The notes under the pieces: generated by a model
The model's input: only the letters and a program-made list of their open reading frames with translations
Told to the model about the DNA's origin: nothing
Databases searched by the model: none
Source of the DNA: Dimorphilus gyrociliatus
Lineage: Eukaryota; Animalia; Annelida
Reading direction: 5' to 3'
Assembly: GCA_904063045.1 (NCBI GenBank)
Contig: CAJFCJ010000011.1
Coordinates: forward strand, 992,001-1,056,000
Length of the DNA stretch: 64,000 nt
Part shown: piece by piece, positions 23,084-36,658 of the stretch
Numbering within the stretch: position 1 is the stretch's first letter
Layout of the letters: each line of letters begins with the position of its first letter
Program-made: the position numbers and the translations under genes

Positions 23084-26000
23084 ATGGGAGTTAAGGAAAG
23101 ACTTTGTATGAATCGATCTTCGAGAGAAGAACGGCAAAGTAATTGCGAGGAGACCCAAAACATCAATCAGGAAAATGTAGTAAACGAGGAGCCTGCTGAA
23201 CCTGGACGAATTAAATGGTCGTCGCCAACAGAATTTATGTTAACTTGCATTGGTTACAGCGTTGGTCTTGGAAATGTATGGAGGTTTCCTTACTTATGCT
23301 ATAAATCTGGAGGAGGTAAATTACATCTAAATATTCTTAATTCTTTACGCAAATTCTATAGTAAATCATCTTATAGATGTTTAATTATTTCTTTGCTAAT
23401 TACTCTTGACAATAATCTCTTTGTTAAGACAAAACAAATATAAATACACATAGTTAATATTATATTCACATACATGTAACTACAACCTCTATCACATCTT
23501 ATCTATTTGAATAAGCTATCATTTACTTTACATTTCTTTATTACAGGAGCCTTCCTTATTCCGTATATGATCATGATGGCTCTTATTGGTTGTCCAGGAT
23601 TATTCTTGGAATATTCATTTGGTCAATTTTGGGGAATTGGCGGATTAACTATATTCAAAAAAGTTTGCCCTTTATTTCAAGGTGGGTTTCTAATAATTTT
23701 TCTACAACAGCCTATTCAATTTTGTCCATGTGACGACACTTCACCATAGGCCTTTAACTTTTTCAAATAAGCATTTCGAGTATTTCTACCCATTTACCAT
23801 AAAATCTATATTAAGCATTTTTGAGGTGAAAACTATTGTAAAGCCTTTATGAATGAATATATCTTTCGCAGCTAACAAGTATAGCATACGTGAGGTCAAT
23901 GTCAGTAGAGCGTAATTCCTTATTTGAATTGAATGGAACTGTCTGATTTTGGCAAAAGCAAATAATTCAATTAGTTTCTCCCTTTCAAAAGCTGAGATTT
24001 GTCTCATTTTAGTAAAAGAATTCAATTAATATTTCTCTGATTCGTAAGCACAAGACTGAAACATGATACGAATAATTACGAAAGGTTTTCCTCTCTTTGT
24101 TTACATTAGCGGAAGACGACACACGAATATATGAATGATTATACGTCGTCCATTTTGACAAATAAGTTGATTCACTTCCTTCTCTAGTCACGGGAAAAAC
24201 AACAGTTAAAAGACTTCTTTACATTTCTTTTGAACTTGTAAATTATATCATAAAAAGTTCATTTCAATTTAAACATTGAAAATATGTCTGAAATTATATC
24301 AATGGAACGCTAAGGATTATGCTGTTTTCAATTTTGCACTGTTACTACAACATTGATTTATGTAGGTCAAAAGCCTTATTCTCTTTATAAAATGCACACC
24401 TCCCCTCTCGTATGCTTTAAAAGCTTAAAATATTCTTCTGAAGATCTTAAAGTGTCATCAAACATATTTTTTTTCGTCTAATCCTAGCTATATCCTTTTT
24501 TTTATTTAAATAATAACAGTAGATGTATTAATTTACAAAACCAAAATTACACTGTTTTATTGAGGCGGCTAAGTTCAATCATTTCATCCGGTTTTAATTT
24601 ACCATTGTTAAAACATGCCATTAAGTATAATCCTATAAATATTCGTTTTAACAGATTATTTCCGTTTTCCAAGATTATTTCTGCTTTGACCTTAAAACTG
24701 CGCGTTGGTTGGTTCTTTATTGCCTTTTTCAATGAATTGCTCACGTTATATGCCTCTAGGCAAATTACACGACACGTATTTGTCACCATGACACAGAATT
24801 TTAGTAAAGAGATTGTAAATTTTATTTTATTGACTAGGCAAGACAAAACGTTTTTATTTAGTAAGCTCGACACTATACTCCGCCGGCAAAAATATCAATA
24901 AATGCCAACACAACTGTTTAAATTAAAAATGACGTTTCAAAAAAAAAGAAGTATATACAGAATATTTTAATATATAAAAATGTATTAATTTTAACTGTTC
25001 CACATATTTCTGACTCAGAGATCATTTTTTGAGAACAATTTCTTTTTTATTTTCAATCACCTATTGTACATTTAGAAATTATTAACAGTGCTATTATTCA
25101 TGTATTTTAGCTGTAAAGGAAGCTACTTTCTAAAGAATATTAAATACGCTGTCTCGAATGAGAATATATACCCTCTTCTTTGTTTTATTAATCCTTGAAA
25201 AAGTTGCTTAGTTACAATATCGATTAGAGTTGTATACTCTTGAAGATCTTGTTCTGAATCGTTGAAACGTTTTGCCTCGTATTAATTTTTGTTACGCTTT
25301 TACAATCGTTCTCATATGCCCTAGCCAAATCAATAGTCTTTTACCCTTCCGTTAATCAATAGTCGACCTAGTGACCTATAAAAAGTCTCATTTTACAATG
25401 AAACCTAATTGAACTATACACTCATTTCGTTGATCAATGACTTTGGCCTATATAGACTATTGAATAGTAATAACTTTCGATTTTTTTAACTCGTCCTAAT
25501 CGTCTGCTCTTTGACGTAATCATGTATATATTCAATATAAACATATGTGACCTACTTATTGAGGGGGCGTTTCATCAATGCACCTTTTTACTACGTCTTA
25601 AATAAGACTCGTGTCACCTTATCAAATTAACAATCTTTTTCATCTATCTTTTACGACTTTTGTATAAGAATGTCCTATAATGGAGTATAGTATAGATGTC
25701 TTTTATTATATTTTTATTTAGTTTGTTGAAATATGATAAGGAATTTTTGAGAGAGCAAAAAAAGCCCCGTCAGATTTATGTGTAGTTGAGCAGGAGGGTG
25801 GGGGGAACTGTTACCGCCTTCGACAACAATATCAGCATATAATTTTTTCTTTACTGTATGATATTTTTAGATTCAGGTTAATAGGATTTCGGAATATTTC
25901 GAAGAATTTTTTAAACTTTATAGCAGACGAGCGAAGTAGAGTTTTTTTAGTTTGACAGAGAGTGGAAGAGATAGTGCATCGCACTTAAATTATCATGTAT

Positions 26001-29000
26001 TCTTTAGAGTAATTTTGTAAAATTCATGTAATTTAGCTTGTATAAAGCTTGGTTTTTCATAGCAAATACAGTTTATTTTGCTGGAATCACAAGGTTCACA
26101 GCTCCAGACGGGTCATTTAAGTGTCCTACTTAGAGTACTCAATTGCCAATATTAGTCTAGAACATGCACGTTCCAATCGTACTATTTGTTAGCGGTCTAA
26201 AACCTTGGCTTATACAGATATCTTTTTATTATTTATTTATCATGCTTTATCGATGTATTACAAAAAATTAATGTCTGGTGAATGTCTTACTCTCTGACCT
26301 ACTTTCCTATTCAAATATTTTTATTCTAACTTTTCATATAAAAAATTTAGAATATTTTTATTTTCATTACAGGAATCGGCCTATGCTATATGGTTTTAAA
26401 TGGTTTCGTGTGCATATACTATAACGTTATCATCGCCCTATCAATACACTACCTCTTTCGTTCATTTACAAGTGATCTACCATGGGGCAGTTGCGGAAAC
26501 GCATGGAATACTCCAAATTGCGGAGATCCAATCGCAAATATTACATATAATAACCAAATGAACAGCACGAACTTCACGACTAGTAGCCCAACAGAATTTG
26601 TTACCTCTACATATTCTCCAAATATGAATAAAACTGACAGAGTTAGCCCATCCAAGGAATATTGGGAAAGAAAATTGTTGGCTGTTACCAGCAGTCATTC
26701 CATTAGCAATTTAGGGAGTATAAGATGGGAATTATGTCTATGTTTACTAGCTGCTTGGGTAATCGTAGTCATATTTGTCAGCAGGGGTATCAAATCAACT
26801 GGAAAAGTTGCTTATTTTACTGCAACTTTCCCTTACCTCATGTTAACTGTTCTGGTTGTCAGGGGAGTCACCCTTAGAGGAGCTTCAGATGGAATCACTT
26901 TCTTTGTAATGCCACAATGGGAGAAGTTGCTATCTCCAGATATTTGGTTTAATGCTGCTACACAGCTATTTTACAGGTTTGTTAAAAAAATTCTCTTTTC
27001 ACCAGATCTAAAGTGCAGTTTTTTGTAACCTATCACTTCCTTTTTTAAGCTTAAGGAAAATATTTATTAATTTTTTTTATATATTGCATTCCATTGTCTT
27101 AGAATATAAACGTGCTAACCATATGATAGTTTTGTTCATATTGTTTTTTACTTATTTTAGGGAACTCAATACTCTAATCCATCTTGCATTTAGCACTTAA
27201 AAAAATACTCTCTAATATCCTGGAATATTTCTTCAATTAGGGAAAAGAATTATTAATCGCCATATAATTTTTAAAATTGTTCTTAAATGTAGATAAAATC
27301 CCAATATTTTCAAAAATTAAAGAAAACTACACATCGGAAGATAATCAATTATATTCAATCAAATTTTTTCTTCAGTACAAATATTGGATGGGGAGGAATG
27401 ATAACGATGGCTTCCTACAACGAGCGAAGTCATAACTGCTTTCGTGACGCAATTGTTATAAACTTTGTTTCTTTTTGTACTTCGCTGTACGCTGGATTTG
27501 CTGTTTTCTCTATCATTGGTTTTATGGCTACAGAAAGTGGACTTGACGTCGGAGTAAGATCAGGATTATCAGAATTTTCCACATATAATTTATTGAAATT
27601 AATATTTTTAGGATGTTATTCAGAGCGGACCTGAACTTGCATTCATTGTATACCCAAGAGCCCTTGCTCTTATGCCTTTGGCACCTATGTGGAGTGCGCT
27701 TTTCTTTTTTATGCTTTTCTTATTGGGAATTGGAAGTCAGGTTTGTACATTTTAAATTTAGTAGCGGTAAACAGTAATAACAAATTATCTAAAAAGCATA
27801 GATTTACTCAAAGAATTTTGAGCGCCGTCTAATTTTTTACTCAAAATACATAGGTATCAATTTATGACAAAGTTATTGCTGAGAAATTAATTTAATCATA
27901 TTAGATTTCGTATAGTTTAAAAGAGTTTTTTTTTTTTACAATAGCTATAATTTATATTATTTTTACATTGGCTATAGTATTTCAATAAGGTTATTTAGTA
28001 AAGTTAGTCTTACAAACTGTTAATTAAGGAGTTGTAAGCCAATTTTTATACCATAAACAAATTATTTATGAAAATTCGTTATTCTCAATGAATTAGCTTA
28101 ATGTCGTTCTCTTGTATAGAATAGATAGGTAGTAATGGTTCAATATGTACGCATCATACAAATTTTTACATGCAACCTTTATATCAATTGATAAGTGTGC
28201 AACACAGCAAACTATACAGGGGGAAAGTTGAGTTTCTTTTCTAAAACTTTGTATCGATTGAATGATAATCTCTGACGGAACTGTCAAAGTGAGCTAATTG
28301 ACTCAAGATCAAAATGAATATGTCATATACAAGATATATTGACATAAACTTTGCGGAAACTTTTGAAATTCTACTGAAAAACTACACAGTTAGAGGTTAA
28401 GAGAACAATCCACAAAAGCTTAGCAGATTTGTGAGACTATTAAAAGCGCTTAGTATTCATCGTGGCCAGTATTCCTTTCGTCATTGAGAATAAAGAATTT
28501 CCATGTATTTTAAGGTTGTGACAATATATTTGAGCAAATTCCAGGTCAGCCTTAATTTACAGTTAAAAAACTTAGCCTGACTTATTATATTAAGCATTTA
28601 ACTTAAAAATATATAATTGCACTAAACTTGGAGGTTAGTACACATTATACTTGTAGAGTATATTGACACTTCTATTGCACGCTCCTGCCTCTATGCTATT
28701 CTTTAAATTAATCTATTTTTCGTTCTACATCAAACTTTTCTTGCTGAATGTCCATAGTATAAATTAAGTTTGGGTTATAATATATCTGGCGTTGAAAGAA
28801 TTTTATTTAACCATATTAATATTGCTATATAATTTTTTAGACGCTTACATGGAATTATCTTTAAAAAATTTTAATATTTCTTATAGAATAGTTAATGCTA
28901 CAGCTTATTATAAAAGGTTTCTTTTATCTTACATCATTTTTTAATTTTATATCAAAAAGTTTTTATTTTTGCAATTATCAATTTAACTATTTAGTACTTT

Positions 29001-32000
29001 ATTACTTACTATAGATGAATACTAAAACCTTAAAAAATTATAGATATAATAAGCATGCATACTAAAATACTGTAAATTAAATTGTATTTATTTTATTATA
29101 TTAGCAATGTAGCTTCAAGCTCTGATTCTATTCTATTTATTACTCTATCTATCTGTCAATAACTAGTGGAGCAAGGGGAATTTTTGCACTATATTAATTA
29201 TATTTAATCACACAGAATCGTTTTGAAATAAAAATTCAAAACAGTTTAGAATAACAATATACCAAAATTTTTATATTTCATCAACAAGGCTTTTTATAAT
29301 TATAAAACTATCTGCTACTTTCGCCAAACCCCGATACAGATGGTGCTCATTGAAACTGTTGTTACTGGATTCGTCGATGAATTTCCTGCTCTTGGCAAAA
29401 CACCTTTAGCCCGCCTCGGAACGACAATAGGTTTTTGCATAGTTTTCTGCTTAGTTGCAATACCACAAACAACCCAGGTATTAGTCAATAGGAACAAGAA
29501 TCAGTAATTTTCTAATAACTGATAAAGGAAGCATTTTTCTCTTAAGAATGAGAGGATGAGCGTGACTGAACATTCATCTGTGTAAAGTTTCTATCTTTTG
29601 CTACTGTTTTTCGGCTACTTATTCATTAAGTTATTTTTGTTATCCACCATAGTTATTTCCTAAAAAGTCATCCCCTATACTCATCTAAAAATTCCCTATC
29701 AAGGCAGGAGTGTTGTAAAAGTATTTTCATAGTAGGAAATATATATTTTGCTTATTTACTTTTAAAGAAATTCTAAGCTAATAGGTTTAATTAGGTAATC
29801 CTTTCAGTAAGCGAGCAATAACGTATCAACTCGATATATAATTCGTTATTGAAGCTATTACCTAACACTGCTCCTCTCCTTAATCTTAGAAAATAATAGT
29901 ATCATTTTGCTTAGTGTTTAACTAAAAATGCATTTCGTATTAGCATGCTAAGAATATTGTGTTAGGCGTTGTTGTCACAATTCTTCAGATGGTTCAAGTA
30001 GAAACAGTGATGACCGGATTACGGGACGAATTTCCTCAATTTAACAGAACAAAAGTTCGCTATCTAGGAAATATCATCGTACTATGCACCGTGGGTTTCC
30101 TGATGGGTTTATCTTGTACAACTCAGGTTTCACTTTAACATTGACAATATATTTTCATTTTTCGAAATAGTCACACCTGTTTTCCTAAAGACAAATAGAG
30201 AGCTATTTCTTTCCCCCTAGTGCATGCTTATCCCTAGATTTTACTCTACACTCCCGTGTAAATTATTATTCTGGGCGGCGCTCTGAAAATGAAAGGATAA
30301 TTGCAGTGTTATATGAATTTTTCCACCTCAAATGAAAAATACTTCTTAATCTAGCTACTATGCTTATTTTTCTGATTGGAAAAGTTTCCTTATTCCCAAA
30401 CCAAATTTATGAAACAGAAAACTTCCGATAAAGAGCTCTTTAAAAGGAAGAAAATTACAAAAGTTACTTTTTATAAATAATCACTGCTGCAAAATAATTC
30501 TTATTAATAATTGATAACGAAAAATTCAAGAAGCGACTATAAACACATTTAGGCTTAAATTAAGTATTCAGTATAATTTTCAAAATCACATATTGAAAAG
30601 TATGCTTAATTGTCGAACATTTTATTATGTAGTCCTTTTTCATATAACGCAGATGGTAGGGTTGGAAACTGTTATGACTGGTATCACTGACGAATTTAAA
30701 ATAAAAATCTGGTGGAAACGGCTTTTGGCTACAGTTGTGGTTGCAGTCTGTATGTTTTTATGTGGTTTACCTCAAGTTACACAGGTTTGATAATATAAAT
30801 CTGTATAGTTCCCATAATTAATGATTATTTAGCTGCATTGATAATAATAGCTGATCAATCAATAATTAGCTTAAATTATATACCATAATATGCAATGGCT
30901 AGCTATACGTATAAGACATAATTTAGGAATATTTACTTAGAACGTATACAGATATATGAAAAAGCTTCTTTCATATATTGCTATACTTAATTATTCCTAA
31001 GATAATTGTACGTTGTTCCAAATTTTCTGCATTTATAACTATCAAATTCTATAAGGTTGATAGATTTTTAACAGAAAATAGCGTCCCAGTTTTAATGTTT
31101 AACCTTTTGATTTTGGTTTCCTGATTTATTCAACAAAACAATTAACAATCACTTTTATAAAAGCGTTGTATATTTGAAATGAATTTAAATCTGCAGGGGC
31201 AGTATACATAGTTATTACATCTATACAACGTGATATGCATCTTTACCTTTTCTATTTCTTATATATAAATTTATATATACATATATCTACTTGTATATAT
31301 GAATATATTATACATGTAATTTTTAAACCAAAGTCTCTCAACCATAGCCTCTTTGTTTGTTGTTAAGTAAATCGCTTCTTAATTTTCTCTATCGAGAAAT
31401 GCAGTGCTACATAAGTTTGCTTCCTTTCATACCGCTCGTCGACTATCTATTGTAATCAAGTTAATCAAGTGAATGATTGTGTAACTGCATGGCGAAAATG
31501 GCTGAACATAGATATGCTTTCCTTTAAACATTGTTTCATAAAAATTCTATCAATTCTTTTACTCTTGCATTAAATAGCAAAGACTGCATACTAATTATAT
31601 TCTTGAATGAGCTTCGGTTATGGGTTAATAAGATTATATACAATATATTTATTCATTTAAAGTATTTTGCTATTTGATTCACGAGCATAATTTTAGATGG
31701 AAAGTGTAAATTTGATATGAACGAACGCTTTTTTTCTATTTAGGGTGGGATGTTTGTGCTGTCACTGATTGACCATTACGCCGCCAGCTTTTCAGTATTG
31801 CTCATAGCTTTTCTTGAATTCATCATTATATACTGGATATATGGTGGAGCGCAATTTTCTGGAGATGTGAAGATTATGTTAGGTTCTCCTCCAGGTGTTT
31901 GGTGGAGGATATGTTGGGCTATTTTGTCACCTTTGGCTATTGTTTTCATTATTATCTTCAGTTTTATTAACTACAAAGGAGCAAAGTATGGTAGTTACAC

Positions 32001-32229
32001 TTATCCTACTTGGGCGGACTTTATTGGATGGTGTATTGCTTTGGCATCTTTCATACCTATTATCCCTATTGCTATTGTTAAACTCCTAAAGAGTTCTGGG
32101 TCCAACATATTTGAGAAATTGAAGTTCATCACTCGACCTCCCTGTGAAAGAGAAGTAGAGAGACGGCAAGATGTTGAGATGAGACAGGGACCTCTTTTAG
32201 AAGAAGCTCCCGGCGCGCTCGACGCCTAA
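23084..32229 (+). CDS. SLC6 Na+/Cl- coupled amino-acid transporter (glycine/proline transporter-like)
   Basis: Exons 23084-23315 ([18 protein letters not shown]), 23547-23681, 26373-26976, 27376-27553, 27612-27740 (LGIGSQ), one of 29340-29477/29989-30126/30653-30784, then 31744-32229. Gly at the SERT D98-equivalent position indicates an amino-acid rather than monoamine substrate. Confidence 0.95.
29340..29477 (+). CDS. SLC6 alternative exon A (TM8b-TM9)
   Basis: cag|ATG..CAG|gtatta, 138 nt: [46 protein letters not shown]. Confidence 0.85.
29989..30126 (+). CDS. SLC6 alternative exon B (TM8b-TM9)
   Basis: cag|ATG..CAG|gtttca, 138 nt: [46 protein letters not shown]. Confidence 0.85.
30653..30784 (+). 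CDS. SLC6 alternative exon C (TM8b-TM9)
   Basis: cag|ATG..CAG|gtttga, 132 nt: [44 protein letters not shown]. Confidence 0.85.
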
Positions 32230-34798: not shown

Positions 34799-35401
34799 TT
34801 AAGAAGATAGAAACTAAAACTGTTGATGAATGTATATAAAAGTTTTTACTTTCGATGTACAAAAACTATTAAAATCAATAAATTTTATTGAATTTTCAAA
34901 CTTTAAACCCTAAAATACAATCTTCAATTGATTTTTCTCTCTCTTAGTCATAGAAATATTTAAAGATAGCTACTCTTCCAAAATATTTCGAAGAGCAATC
35001 TTTTATATTACTAATTTAATCTATTAATTTTATAAGAGATCTTCTATTCAAGAAATGCATATCACTACTGCAAAGAAACAAAAAACCAATAATTCACCTT
35101 TAACATTTTAACAATTTAAAGAAAATATAAGACTTGAATGTAATAGATTTACTTTATCTTTTTTAGTCTTTGTTTGTTTTTAAAGAATTTACTTTCGATC
35201 TTTTTTAAAAATATTCATATTCTTTAAATAGGCTAGGTAACCAGTTTTTTTTAGTTGGAAAGGATTATCCATACATCTTGTGCCAAGTATCAAATGTATT
35301 GATCAAGCATCTATAAATTTCACGTGTACTTTAACACATAGGCATTTTACTCTTGATACTTGCTTTCATTCTGTTAAGTTTGAACGTTGAGAAATTGAAT
35401 A

Positions 35402-36658
35402 ATGAAAATTCAGCTTAAGTACTTAATATTTGTAGCTTTGTTAGTTTTTTGTTCATGCGAAGATGAAAAAAAACCAAAGAAGCATGACGATCATCCTCCA
35501 ATAAAGGAAGCTCACTATGATCATGGTGAACACAATGAAGATTATGACCACCAAGCTGTCTTAGGTAATTTAATTTTTTCTAATAATGAATTATTTGAAG
35601 GTTGTTACATTCAAATACACTTCTTGTAGGTTCTGAACAAGACGCCGAAGAATTTTCTAAATTGGACGCTGCTGAAGCTAAAGATAGATTAGAGAGTCTT
35701 GCCAAGGAAAAAATTGATTTGAATAAAGATCACATCATTGATGAAAATGAATTGGCAAATCATATCCTAAAATCATTCGTTAAGTTGGATGACGCCGAGG
35801 TAGTAATCTCTTTGTAAGCTATTAAAAACGTTTTCTTATAATGTGTCGATTGCAATAGGCTCAGGTTAGATTTGGAGAAACTGATGCCGATTCTGATGAT
35901 ATTCTCACTTGGAAAGAATATATGCAAGAAACCTACGGGATGAGTGAAGAAGAACTTCAGGAACAAGCTAAAACAGACAAAGACAAGAAAAATATGTTAA
36001 ATGTGAGTAATTTCTATATTAAATACTTCAAGTATATTTATTTAATGCAACATAATTATTATTTCCTTTAGGATATTCTTATCGAAAAGTCAAGATTCTT
36101 TTTGGCTGACAGAAACAAGGATCAAACTTTGGACAGAAAAGAATTTAACGCTTTTTACCATCCATTTAATTACGAATATATGCACGAAAATGAAGTGAGA
36201 CTTTTTAGTTAATAAGCCATAATTCATTCATTCTTATTAATCATAATTTTCCATTTCTAGATTAACAATACTTTCAAATTTCATGACAAAAATAGTGATG
36301 GTTTCATTACATTCAACGAATACTCTGATGAGAATGCTGATAAAGAGACAGCCGATTACGATAAAGAACACTTTAAACAATACGACAAAGACAGCAATGG
36401 AAAATTGGACAAAAAGGTAAGATATCAGATGTTAGAGCACGTTTTGGGAAGGAGTAGTTAATTTATATTTTTCATCAGGAAGTAGAAAAGTGGGTTATTC
36501 CCGATCACGGACAATTGGCTATTGATGAAGCTAAGCATCTCATCAGTGAAACAGACGCTGATAAAGATGGTAAACTCACTATAGATGAAATTAGAGATCA
36601 ACATTCACTCTGGGTTGGAAGTCAACATATTTCTTTACACGATCCAGAAGAGTTGTAA
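35402..36658 (+). CDS. CREC-family EF-hand ER protein (reticulocalbin-2/calumenin-like)
   Basis: Exons 35402-35564, 35630-35799, 35859-36002, 36072-36194, 36261-36416, 36479-36658. Signal peptide, EHNEDYDHQAVLG motif, six EF-hands (e.g. DKNSDGFITFNEY), C-terminal HDPEEL retrieval-like signal. Confidence 0.92.

Follow-up and report, generated by a model that had tools for sequence, protein, structure and literature searches.

Three Tandem Cassette Exons in an SLC6 Gene

Can a single transporter gene exchange part of its own substrate pocket by splicing? This question is raised by a gene of the SLC6 family (SNF/NSS family) in the annelid Dimorphilus gyrociliatus, located at positions 23084–32229 on the plus strand of a 64,000-nucleotide (nt) stretch of contig CAJFCJ010000011.1 (positions 992,001 to 1,056,000 of the contig; this whole stretch is hereafter called the window). 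Three homologous exons follow its fifth exon in tandem, and they encode Leu, Gln, and Gly, respectively, at the same position of the eighth transmembrane helix (TM8). As anatomy, a splicing switch of pocket chemistry is well supported. The explanation favored here, with moderate probability, is that three tandem-duplicated and mutually exclusive exons would switch a pocket residue and thereby change substrate selectivity or affinity, and that the animal would use this change physiologically.

All three cassette exons lie on the plus strand downstream of exon 5. Cassette exon A (29340–29477; 138 nt, 46 codons) starts with MVLIET, ends with TTQ, and has Leu as its third residue (CTC, 29346–29348). 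Cassette exon B (29989–30126; 138 nt, 46 codons) starts with MVQVET, also ends with TTQ, and has Gln (CAA, 29995–29997). Cassette exon C (30653–30784; 132 nt, 44 codons) starts with MVGLET, ends with VTQ, and has Gly (GGG, 30659–30661). Each is in phase 0 and flanked by AG on the 5' side and GT on the 3' side; each encodes the second (cytoplasmic) half of TM8, the intracellular loop IL4, and TM9. Their pairwise amino acid identity is 41–46%. Homologous, in the same phase, nearly equal in length and each with its own splice sites, they constitute a tandem-duplicated exon cluster. When A, B, or C is joined to the constant exons, an open SLC6 protein of 633, 633, or 631 amino acids, respectively, is obtained. 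No fourth or degenerate cassette was detected in the window, including the long 1.6-kb intron (tblastn; the next match has an E-value of at least 0.24).

A preliminary description of the window, made from the sequence alone, had claimed that the three exons give Leu, Gln, and Gly at residue 3, and the positions, frames, and splice sites are all as it claimed. The alignment of the cassettes also agrees with its statement that the loop between TM8 and TM9 differs entirely. IL4 and TM9 are wholly different between the cassettes, and in several species the C-type loop is shorter by 2–3 residues. The cassette contains the cytoplasmic half of TM8 and the conserved DEF gate motif.

Position of the Third Cassette Residue in the Substrate Pocket

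Each cassette alone, and the 101-residue TM8–TM9 region of P0154 (the C-type ortholog of a relative, see below), were aligned to solved SLC6 structures. The alignments are gap-free around TM8, with E-values down to 2e-28. Residue 3 is aligned to residue 582 of GlyT2 (T582), the Leu of GlyT1 (in FCLLET), G421 of the human creatine transporter (hCRT), E406 of TauT, T400 of GAT1, and G426 of hDAT. T400 of GAT1 corresponds to I359 of LeuT in the central site (PMC3317675). E406 of TauT corresponds to this Thr of GAT1 and to one of the three Gly residues that make room for an aromatic ring in monoamine transporters (PMC11923213). Based on these alignments and the cited structures, residue 3 is placed at the LeuT I359/SERT G442 position, within the central substrate site (S1). 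The numbering given in the preliminary description agrees with PMC3317675, PMC11923213, and the structure alignments. The Leu of exon A stands opposite the Leu of GlyT1, as had been stated, and the Gly of exon C is shared not only with monoamine transporters (hDAT 426), as had also been stated, but with the creatine transporter (hCRT G421).

The toggled residue is among the best-studied specificity positions of the SLC6 family. I359Q of LeuT, E406 of TauT, T400 of GAT1, G421 of hCRT, T582 of GlyT2, and S427 of SLC6A14 all occupy the same structural position, and the chemistry there sets the preference for size or charge. E406 of TauT forms a salt bridge with the amine of taurine, and E406T shifts the half-maximal effective concentration (EC50) from 2.9 to 50 µM and also changes the maximal current (PMC11923213). 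Gly is found at this position in hCRT (PMC12435270), and T582 of GlyT2 is among the predicted glycine-site residues (PMC4919009). The LeuT mutation I359Q, which introduces the same Gln as cassette B, makes Trp, otherwise an inhibitor, a substrate that is transported; the residue of SLC6A14 at this position is S427 (PMC9599917). F259 and I359 of LeuT act together as a volumetric sensor by which substrate size is coupled to Na2 release and transport rate (PMC6689989).

Among 244 TM8 motifs from a biased sample of homologs, residue 3 is L in 83, M in 70, G in 24, I in 13, C in 10, T in 9, N in 8, Q in 8, and D in 5. The Gln of exon B had been called atypical. This is only mildly true; Gln is uncommon but not unique (8 of 244). 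In the first 16 residues of 21 annelid cassettes, positions 1, 2, 5, 6, 9, and 13 are invariant. Position 3 shows five states (L, Q, C, G, and D), and position 4 shows four (I, V, L, and F). Position 4 is presumably the "subsite B" residue, S426/M427 in dDAT/hDAT numbering. PDB titles among the Foldseek matches of the P0154 model name "subsite B" S426/M427.

The other walls of the pocket are near-invariant in 12 members of the annelid clade. These are TM1 (a segment with C-[IV]), TM3 (YYNVIIA), TM6 (QLFY-[SA]-[TL]-N-[IL]-[AG]-WGGM), and the first half of TM8 (LG-[IV]-GSQ). Among cassettes of one type, conservation is higher in the TM8 half than in IL4 and TM9. The A type keeps the MVLIET start and VDEF/VDEY from Dimorphilus to Capitella.

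RNA Evidence for Use of One Cassette at a Time

Three public runs cover parts of the window, and their contigs (not reads) were mapped to 26373–32229. Run X3 is coded as "organism A" with no recorded library type; its contigs match the window at 100% identity, and it may be the source sample of the assembly. Run X2 is a marine metatranscriptome, ~96% identical and hence derived from a relative. Such contigs show presence, not absence, and their depth is unsuitable for ranking isoform abundance.

The joints in X3 all follow GT..AG. They connect exon 3 with exon 4, exon 4 with exon 5, exon 5 with A (27740 to 29340), A with the last exon (29477 to 31744), exon 5 with C (27740 to 30653), and C with the last exon (30784 to 31744). 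The sides of the X3 joints are just 22–27 nt, as expected of unitigs terminating at splice branch points. Introns are represented in X3 as well, which implies that unspliced or genomic material is present. Independently, X2 has the joint between C and the last exon, one side of which measures 55 nt. Among the contigs of the three runs, none joins A to B, B to C, or A to C. Thus each RNA takes one exon in the cases of A and C, which are mutually exclusive alternatives in the RNA contigs. The splicing alternatives proposed in the preliminary description stand for these two, joined singly; for exon B, no joint was seen in this species. A single cassette is also found in each of the Owenia isoforms and in the complementary DNAs (cDNAs) P0154 and P0168, described below.

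Some X2 contigs are ~93–95% identical to the intronic stretches 27979–28166 and 30335–30535, and represent either unspliced RNA or carry-over of the relative's DNA. These stretches do not overlap the conserved intron blocks described below.

Selection on the Three Cassettes

A search with exon 3 yielded an 84%-identical fragment, and its 90% cluster includes a relative's cDNA and the product of a genomic contig. The former, P0154 (L009), is a full-length protein of 630 amino acids encoded without introns on a 2128-nt contig, which corresponds to a C-type cDNA. The latter is the product of the last exon on L001, a 38-kb genomic contig of another relative. Here, A, B, and C are present in the same order with intact AG/GT, and encode Leu, Gln, and Gly at residue 3.

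Against this relative, the ratio of non-synonymous to synonymous substitution rates (dN/dS, Nei–Gojobori) is 0.11 for A, 0.12 for B, and 0.055 for C, with dS of 0.5–1.4. Exon A shows 87% amino acid identity. Constant exon 5 shows 93% identity and a dN/dS of 0.03. The four surrounding introns are 52–61% identical over aligned columns. Each of the three copies has been kept by selection. In the TM8 half of exon B (first 16 codons), 8 synonymous and 0 non-synonymous changes are seen, with an exon-wide dS of ~1.4. The loop and TM9 part of the same exon contains 16.5 non-synonymous changes. Because of the dN/dS of 0.12, the 0 versus 8 changes in the TM8 half, and the unalignable introns, exon B is judged to be a coding exon under purifying selection.

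Cassettes in Other Annelids and Their Age

The closest named homologs of P0154 are found in Lamellibrachia (66% identity), Capitella (63%), Owenia (60%), and Helobdella (56%), and vertebrate GlyT1 shows ~45%, a ranking that favors an annelid source. Capitella has three tandem cassettes after the equivalent of exon 5, starting with MVLIET, MVQVET, and MVDVET, and the third has 44 codons, as in C. Owenia also has three, starting with MVQFET, MVDFET, and MVGFET (Gln, Asp, and Gly). In Helobdella robusta, one cassette is present (L005, 6892–7029), which starts with MVCVET and is B-like with Cys; the retrieved locus shows no tandem copies. Judged from this locus, the leech lineage has apparently lost part of the cluster. 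AG/GT sites flank all cassettes of Capitella, Owenia, and Helobdella. The Lamellibrachia gene model and contig end at exon 5 and are uninformative on the cassettes.

Transcript-derived orthologs contain one cassette each, with Leu (P0160 and P0161), Cys (P0162), or Asp (P0158 and P0166). Two cDNAs of other annelids are of the Gln type: P0168, whose 1882-nt contig lacks introns, and P0172, which comes from a transcriptome. Two products of the orthologous gene in Owenia, CAH1785348.1 and CAH1785349.1, are identical except for the cassette, with Gly versus Asp at residue 3. The residue set of Owenia (Gln/Asp/Gly) differs from that of Dimorphilus (Leu/Gln/Gly). The annotation of Owenia thus already carries two isoforms, as unnamed database products; no description of this pair was found in the literature.

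In a tree of 21 annelid cassettes (46 columns), the A (Leu) type forms a clade with both Dimorphilus and Capitella (support 93/93), and the remaining branches are not resolved. Because the A clade contains both, the duplication that generated the A type is dated, on this tree, before the split of the Dimorphilus and Capitella lineages. The Owenia cluster suggests a still older origin, with independent duplication in Owenia as the alternative.

Two other views of the cluster were considered and rejected. It does not represent compensation for gene loss in a compact genome, since Capitella and Owenia, with larger loci, also have it. Nor is it widespread among GlyT1-like genes in our sample, where 8 mollusc and nemertean isoform pairs differ at the N terminus alone. 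In the nemertean Lineus longissimus, two isoforms of a GlyT1-like protein (P0238 and P0285; XP_064636103.1 and XP_064636102.1) differ at five positions, all in the equivalent of exon 5. They include the Ser/Thr residue of the motif G-L-D-[ST]-Q in the first half of TM8. The differences suggest that this gene has its own, separate pair of mutually exclusive exons, lying one exon before the place of the annelid cluster.

Conserved Intron Blocks and Exon Choice

How is only one cassette chosen? All cassettes are multiples of three nucleotides in length, and therefore frame-shift and nonsense-mediated decay cannot enforce exclusivity. The introns between the cassettes exceed 500 nt, and therefore steric hindrance between splice sites cannot enforce it either. 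In Owenia, the Asp-type and Gly-type exons are just 64 nt apart (L006, 21513–21843). Unlike here, this spacing could permit steric hindrance of splice sites to enforce exclusivity.

Exon choice probably depends on long-range pairings between conserved intron segments, which would bracket and loop out the unused cassettes. Seven intron blocks are 91–100% identical to the relative within otherwise unalignable introns. Blocks were defined against the relative, and pairing energies were calculated in both species and compared with those of random pairs of intron segments. All blocks are on the plus strand. Block b1 (27798–27878) is 91% identical over 81 nt, in an intron that is otherwise ~52% identical. 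Block b2 (28675–28692) and block b3 (29519–29536), the latter just after exon A, are identical at 18 of 18 nt, and block b4 (29701–29717) at 17 of 17 nt. A block of 52 nt directly before the acceptor of exon B (29937–29988) is ~90% conserved. Block b6 (30275–30301), after exon B, is 93% identical over 27 nt, and block b7 (31417–31440), before the last exon, is 92% identical over 24 nt.

The pairing of b2 with b4 would loop out exon A; its energy is -26.7 kcal/mol here and -25.0 kcal/mol in the relative, and 0 of 1500 random pairs are as strong. The pairing of b1 with b6 would loop out A and B (-24.7 and -24.0 kcal/mol; 0.4% of random pairs as strong). The pairing of b6 with b7 would loop out C (-20.5 and -26.4 kcal/mol; 0.3%), and that of b3 with b7 would loop out B and C (-14.4 and -15.7 kcal/mol; ~1% tail of the null). 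Thus b6 can pair with b1 or b7, and b3 and b6 compete for b7 via overlapping bases. With two competing partners, b7 looks like a docking site with competing selectors. The compact locus, with short introns and few conserved pairing blocks, is suited to the study of three-way exon choice.

What the Switch Would Change

In the proposed mechanism, each mRNA would take one cassette, so that the cytoplasmic half of TM8 (TM8b), IL4, and TM9 are swapped. The remaining pocket walls (TM1, TM3, TM6, and the part of TM8 encoded by exon 5) are constant across the isoforms. The cassette sets residue 3 and the next residue (Ile, Val, or Leu), and the S1 subsite beside the side chain or tail of the substrate would be altered in size and polarity. 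Leu in isoform A would give a small hydrophobic pocket like that of GlyT1. Gln in isoform B would give a polar, hydrogen-bonding pocket. Gly in isoform C would give the largest cavity, as in creatine and monoamine transporters. Because the cassette sets pocket residue 3, the isoforms would be expected to differ in the solutes they accept or in how tightly these are bound.

Several observations weigh against this explanation. The swap of a cassette alters IL4 and TM9 as well, so selection may have acted on a difference other than the pocket residue. Positions 11–12 are as variable as position 3 among the 21 annelid cassettes. In NKCC2, the closest analogue, the choice of cassette adjusts ion affinity and leaves the identity of the substrate unchanged. 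The evidence that Dimorphilus uses exon A comes from a single run, X3, whose library type is not recorded and whose joints have sides of 22–27 nt. No joint of exon B is present in any of the three runs, and an X3 contig (29449–30679) crosses exon B unbroken, at the depth of the flanking introns. Finally, the cassette tree is resolved for the A type alone, and no one-to-one orthology is claimed for B, C, and the Owenia exons.

A stronger version of the pocket-switch explanation can be put forward tentatively, as a possibility somewhat below an even chance. In this version, the isoforms would carry different solute classes: small neutral amino acids with Leu, polar or amide solutes with Gln, bulky or extended ones with Gly, and amine-tailed or cationic ones with Asp (Capitella and Owenia). 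One gene and splicing would do the work of several paralogs, and this would have been kept since before the split of Owenia. The reading given in the preliminary description is partly supported, and its proposal that the isoforms differ in substrate, as opposed to affinity or kinetics on one substrate, may be correct.

The latter alternative, somewhat unlikely in our estimate, is NKCC2-like tuning: the isoforms would handle the same substrate or substrates but differ in affinity, turnover, or ion coupling, giving high- and low-affinity versions chosen by tissue. It is consistent with the volumetric sensor of LeuT, in which I359 and F259 link the size of the substrate to transport rate and Na2 release (PMC6689989), with the effects of E406T on both EC50 and maximal current in TauT (PMC11923213), and with the three-way SLC12A1 cluster as the nearest known analogue (PMC9741552). 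The presence of the cytoplasmic TM8 half and the conserved DEF gate motif inside the cassette points in the same direction. However, the changes at residue 3 (Leu, Gln, Gly, Asp, and Cys) are chemically drastic, and equivalent changes alter the substrate range, as in LeuT I359Q and in Glu of TauT versus Thr of GAT1 versus Gly of hCRT. Tuning overlaps with a switch of selectivity, because a large enough change in affinity is a change in specificity.

The wholly different IL4 and TM9, the shorter C-type loop, and the high variability of positions 11, 12, and 14–17 among the 21 annelid cassettes would fit another alternative, in which the selected difference lies in IL4/TM9 (regulation, trafficking, binding of lipids or partners, or oligomer contacts) and the pocket residue is incidental. 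Against it, conservation within a type is highest in the TM8 half, and in exon B the 0 versus 8 changes of that half stand beside 16.5 non-synonymous changes in the loop and TM9. Since the TM8 half is under the strongest selection and IL4/TM9 drift within a type, a role centered on IL4/TM9 is less likely, and we regard it as distinctly unlikely.

That this animal has two isoforms alone, with exon B as an unused relic, is very improbable: the lack of an exon B joint in the three runs and the X3 contig unbranched at intron depth would fit it, but contigs cannot prove absence, the frame and AG/GT of exon B are intact in two species with a dN/dS of 0.12 at a dS of ~1.4, conservation reaches ~90% in the 52 nt that precede its acceptor, among introns at background identity, and cDNAs of other annelids (P0168 and P0172) contain a spliced-in Gln-type cassette. 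We infer that exon B is used in this species.

Comparison with Known Systems

NKCC2 (SLC12A1) also has the LeuT fold, and its exons A, B, and F set ion affinity along the nephron. It resembles the annelid gene in having a three-way tandem cluster in a secondary transporter, where one cassette per mRNA swaps a pathway-lining helix. The difference is that in NKCC2, a member of the SLC12 family, TM2 and the adjacent loop are exchanged and ion affinity is affected, whereas in this SLC6 gene it is TM8b–TM9 and a predicted determinant of the organic substrate. The SLC12A1 cluster has been catalogued as a tandem duplicated exon substitution event (PMC9741552). Exons 13A–D of mrp-1 in C. elegans are likewise more than two homologous exons, with lengths in multiples of three, that are used singly in the membrane domain of a transporter (PMC4165533). 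MRP-1 is an ABC exporter, whereas the annelid SLC6 gene belongs to a family of ion-coupled symporters.

Variation of the pocket elsewhere in SLC6 is found among separate genes or laboratory mutants; here there is one gene and splicing chooses. No relevant paper was found on mutually exclusive exons in SLC6, annelids, or Dimorphilus, within an incomplete coverage of the literature. The main text of the human catalogue (PMC9741552) contains no SLC6 gene, and the C. elegans list (PMC4165533) contains no snf gene. The kind of event, exclusive exons swapping a transporter helix, is known from SLC12A1 and mrp-1. With the annelid cluster, SLC6 joins a short list of transporter families in which mutually exclusive exons provide diversity. 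Its members rank among the major drug targets, and the role of their pocket residues in substrate choice is usually probed via paralogs or mutants. The annelid gene offers a natural comparison, with the same backbone and pocket walls and one TM8 position changed among Leu, Gln, and Gly (Asp and Cys elsewhere). It is a clean natural system for the role of the I359/T400/E406/G442 position in selectivity and coupling.

Vertebrate GlyT1 (SLC6A9) is the best-scoring named family outside annelids (~45% identity). It shares LG-x-G-[ST]-Q, the Trp of GWGG in TM6, and the Leu of isoform A. Its TM6 reads FYSLGCAWGG, in contrast to FYSTN-I/L-G/A-WGG in annelids, and the Asn of TM7 is shifted in the annelid clade. 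Known variants of GlyT1 differ at the N and C termini, not in TM8–TM9. Orthology to GlyT1 was rejected because of the ~45% identity, compared with 56–67% to the annelid-only group, and the differences in TM6 and TM7. Because of these differences, the annelid clade is not to be called a glycine transporter.

Gene Model, Protein Fold, and Neighboring Genes

The hand-built model of the gene has GT..AG introns and an open frame. Constant exons 1–4 correspond to 23084–23315, 23547–23681, 26373–26976, and 27376–27553 on the plus strand. Constant exon 5 (27612–27740) encodes the extracellular loop EL4b together with the initial half of TM8; it ends with LGIGSQ, which comprises the Na2-site Ser and the residue preceding the cassette. 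The last exon (31744–32229) encodes TM10–TM12 and the C terminus, with the stop codon at 32227–32229, and its acceptor is common to A and C. Introns 3/4 and 4/5 are backed by the joints in run X3. The latter is a very short GT..AG intron of 58 nt (27554–27611). The window is AT-rich (~30% GC), and the gene structure is eukaryotic.

Exon 3 and the last exon match Pfam PF00209 with E-values of 5.6e-63 (213.9 bits) and 2.2e-32 (112.9 bits), respectively; by the curated cut-off (27), the gene belongs to the SLC6/NSS family. Cassettes B and C correspond to positions 364–407 of the PF00209 profile and the last exon to the directly adjacent positions 408–523. The ortholog P0154 matches positions 1–523 of 524 with 659 bits. 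A search of a 5.8-billion protein set with the last exon yielded no match in the permitted length range.

The AlphaFold2 model of P0154, representing the C isoform of the relative, has a mean predicted local distance difference test score (pLDDT) of 84 and a predicted template-modeling score (pTM) of 0.85, and shows the LeuT fold with 12 transmembrane helices. TM8 spans residues 404–438 and TM9 443–465, and the cassette (424–467) starts in the middle of TM8 and ends just past TM9. In Foldseek comparisons with hPROT, GlyT1, GlyT2, GAT1, and TauT, the target template-modeling scores are 0.89–0.95. Those for hPROT and GlyT1 are 0.93–0.94, with a root-mean-square deviation of 1.8–1.9 Å. The GLGNVW motif of TM1, the unwound region of TM6, and the G-x-x-S motif of TM8 are all present.

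In TM7 (exon 4, 27376–27553), 12 of 12 annelid-clade proteins read I-N-x-V-S-F-x-T-S. The Asn seen in TM7 of 36 of 50 aligned SLC6 homologs is replaced by Ser in all 12, and Asn is found three residues earlier. The usual TM7 Asn is, we assume, that of the Na1/Cl- site. In TM6, the annelid clade has Asn at the position of Gly in GlyT1. These differences in TM7 and TM6 may reflect unusual ion coupling in the annelid clade.

Downstream of the SLC6 gene, synteny with the relative's contig L001 (12635–20055; the window from ~35400–36000 on) is seen. A gene for a secreted EF-hand protein (reticulocalbin-like) is followed by a gene for an ASC/DEG-ENaC channel.

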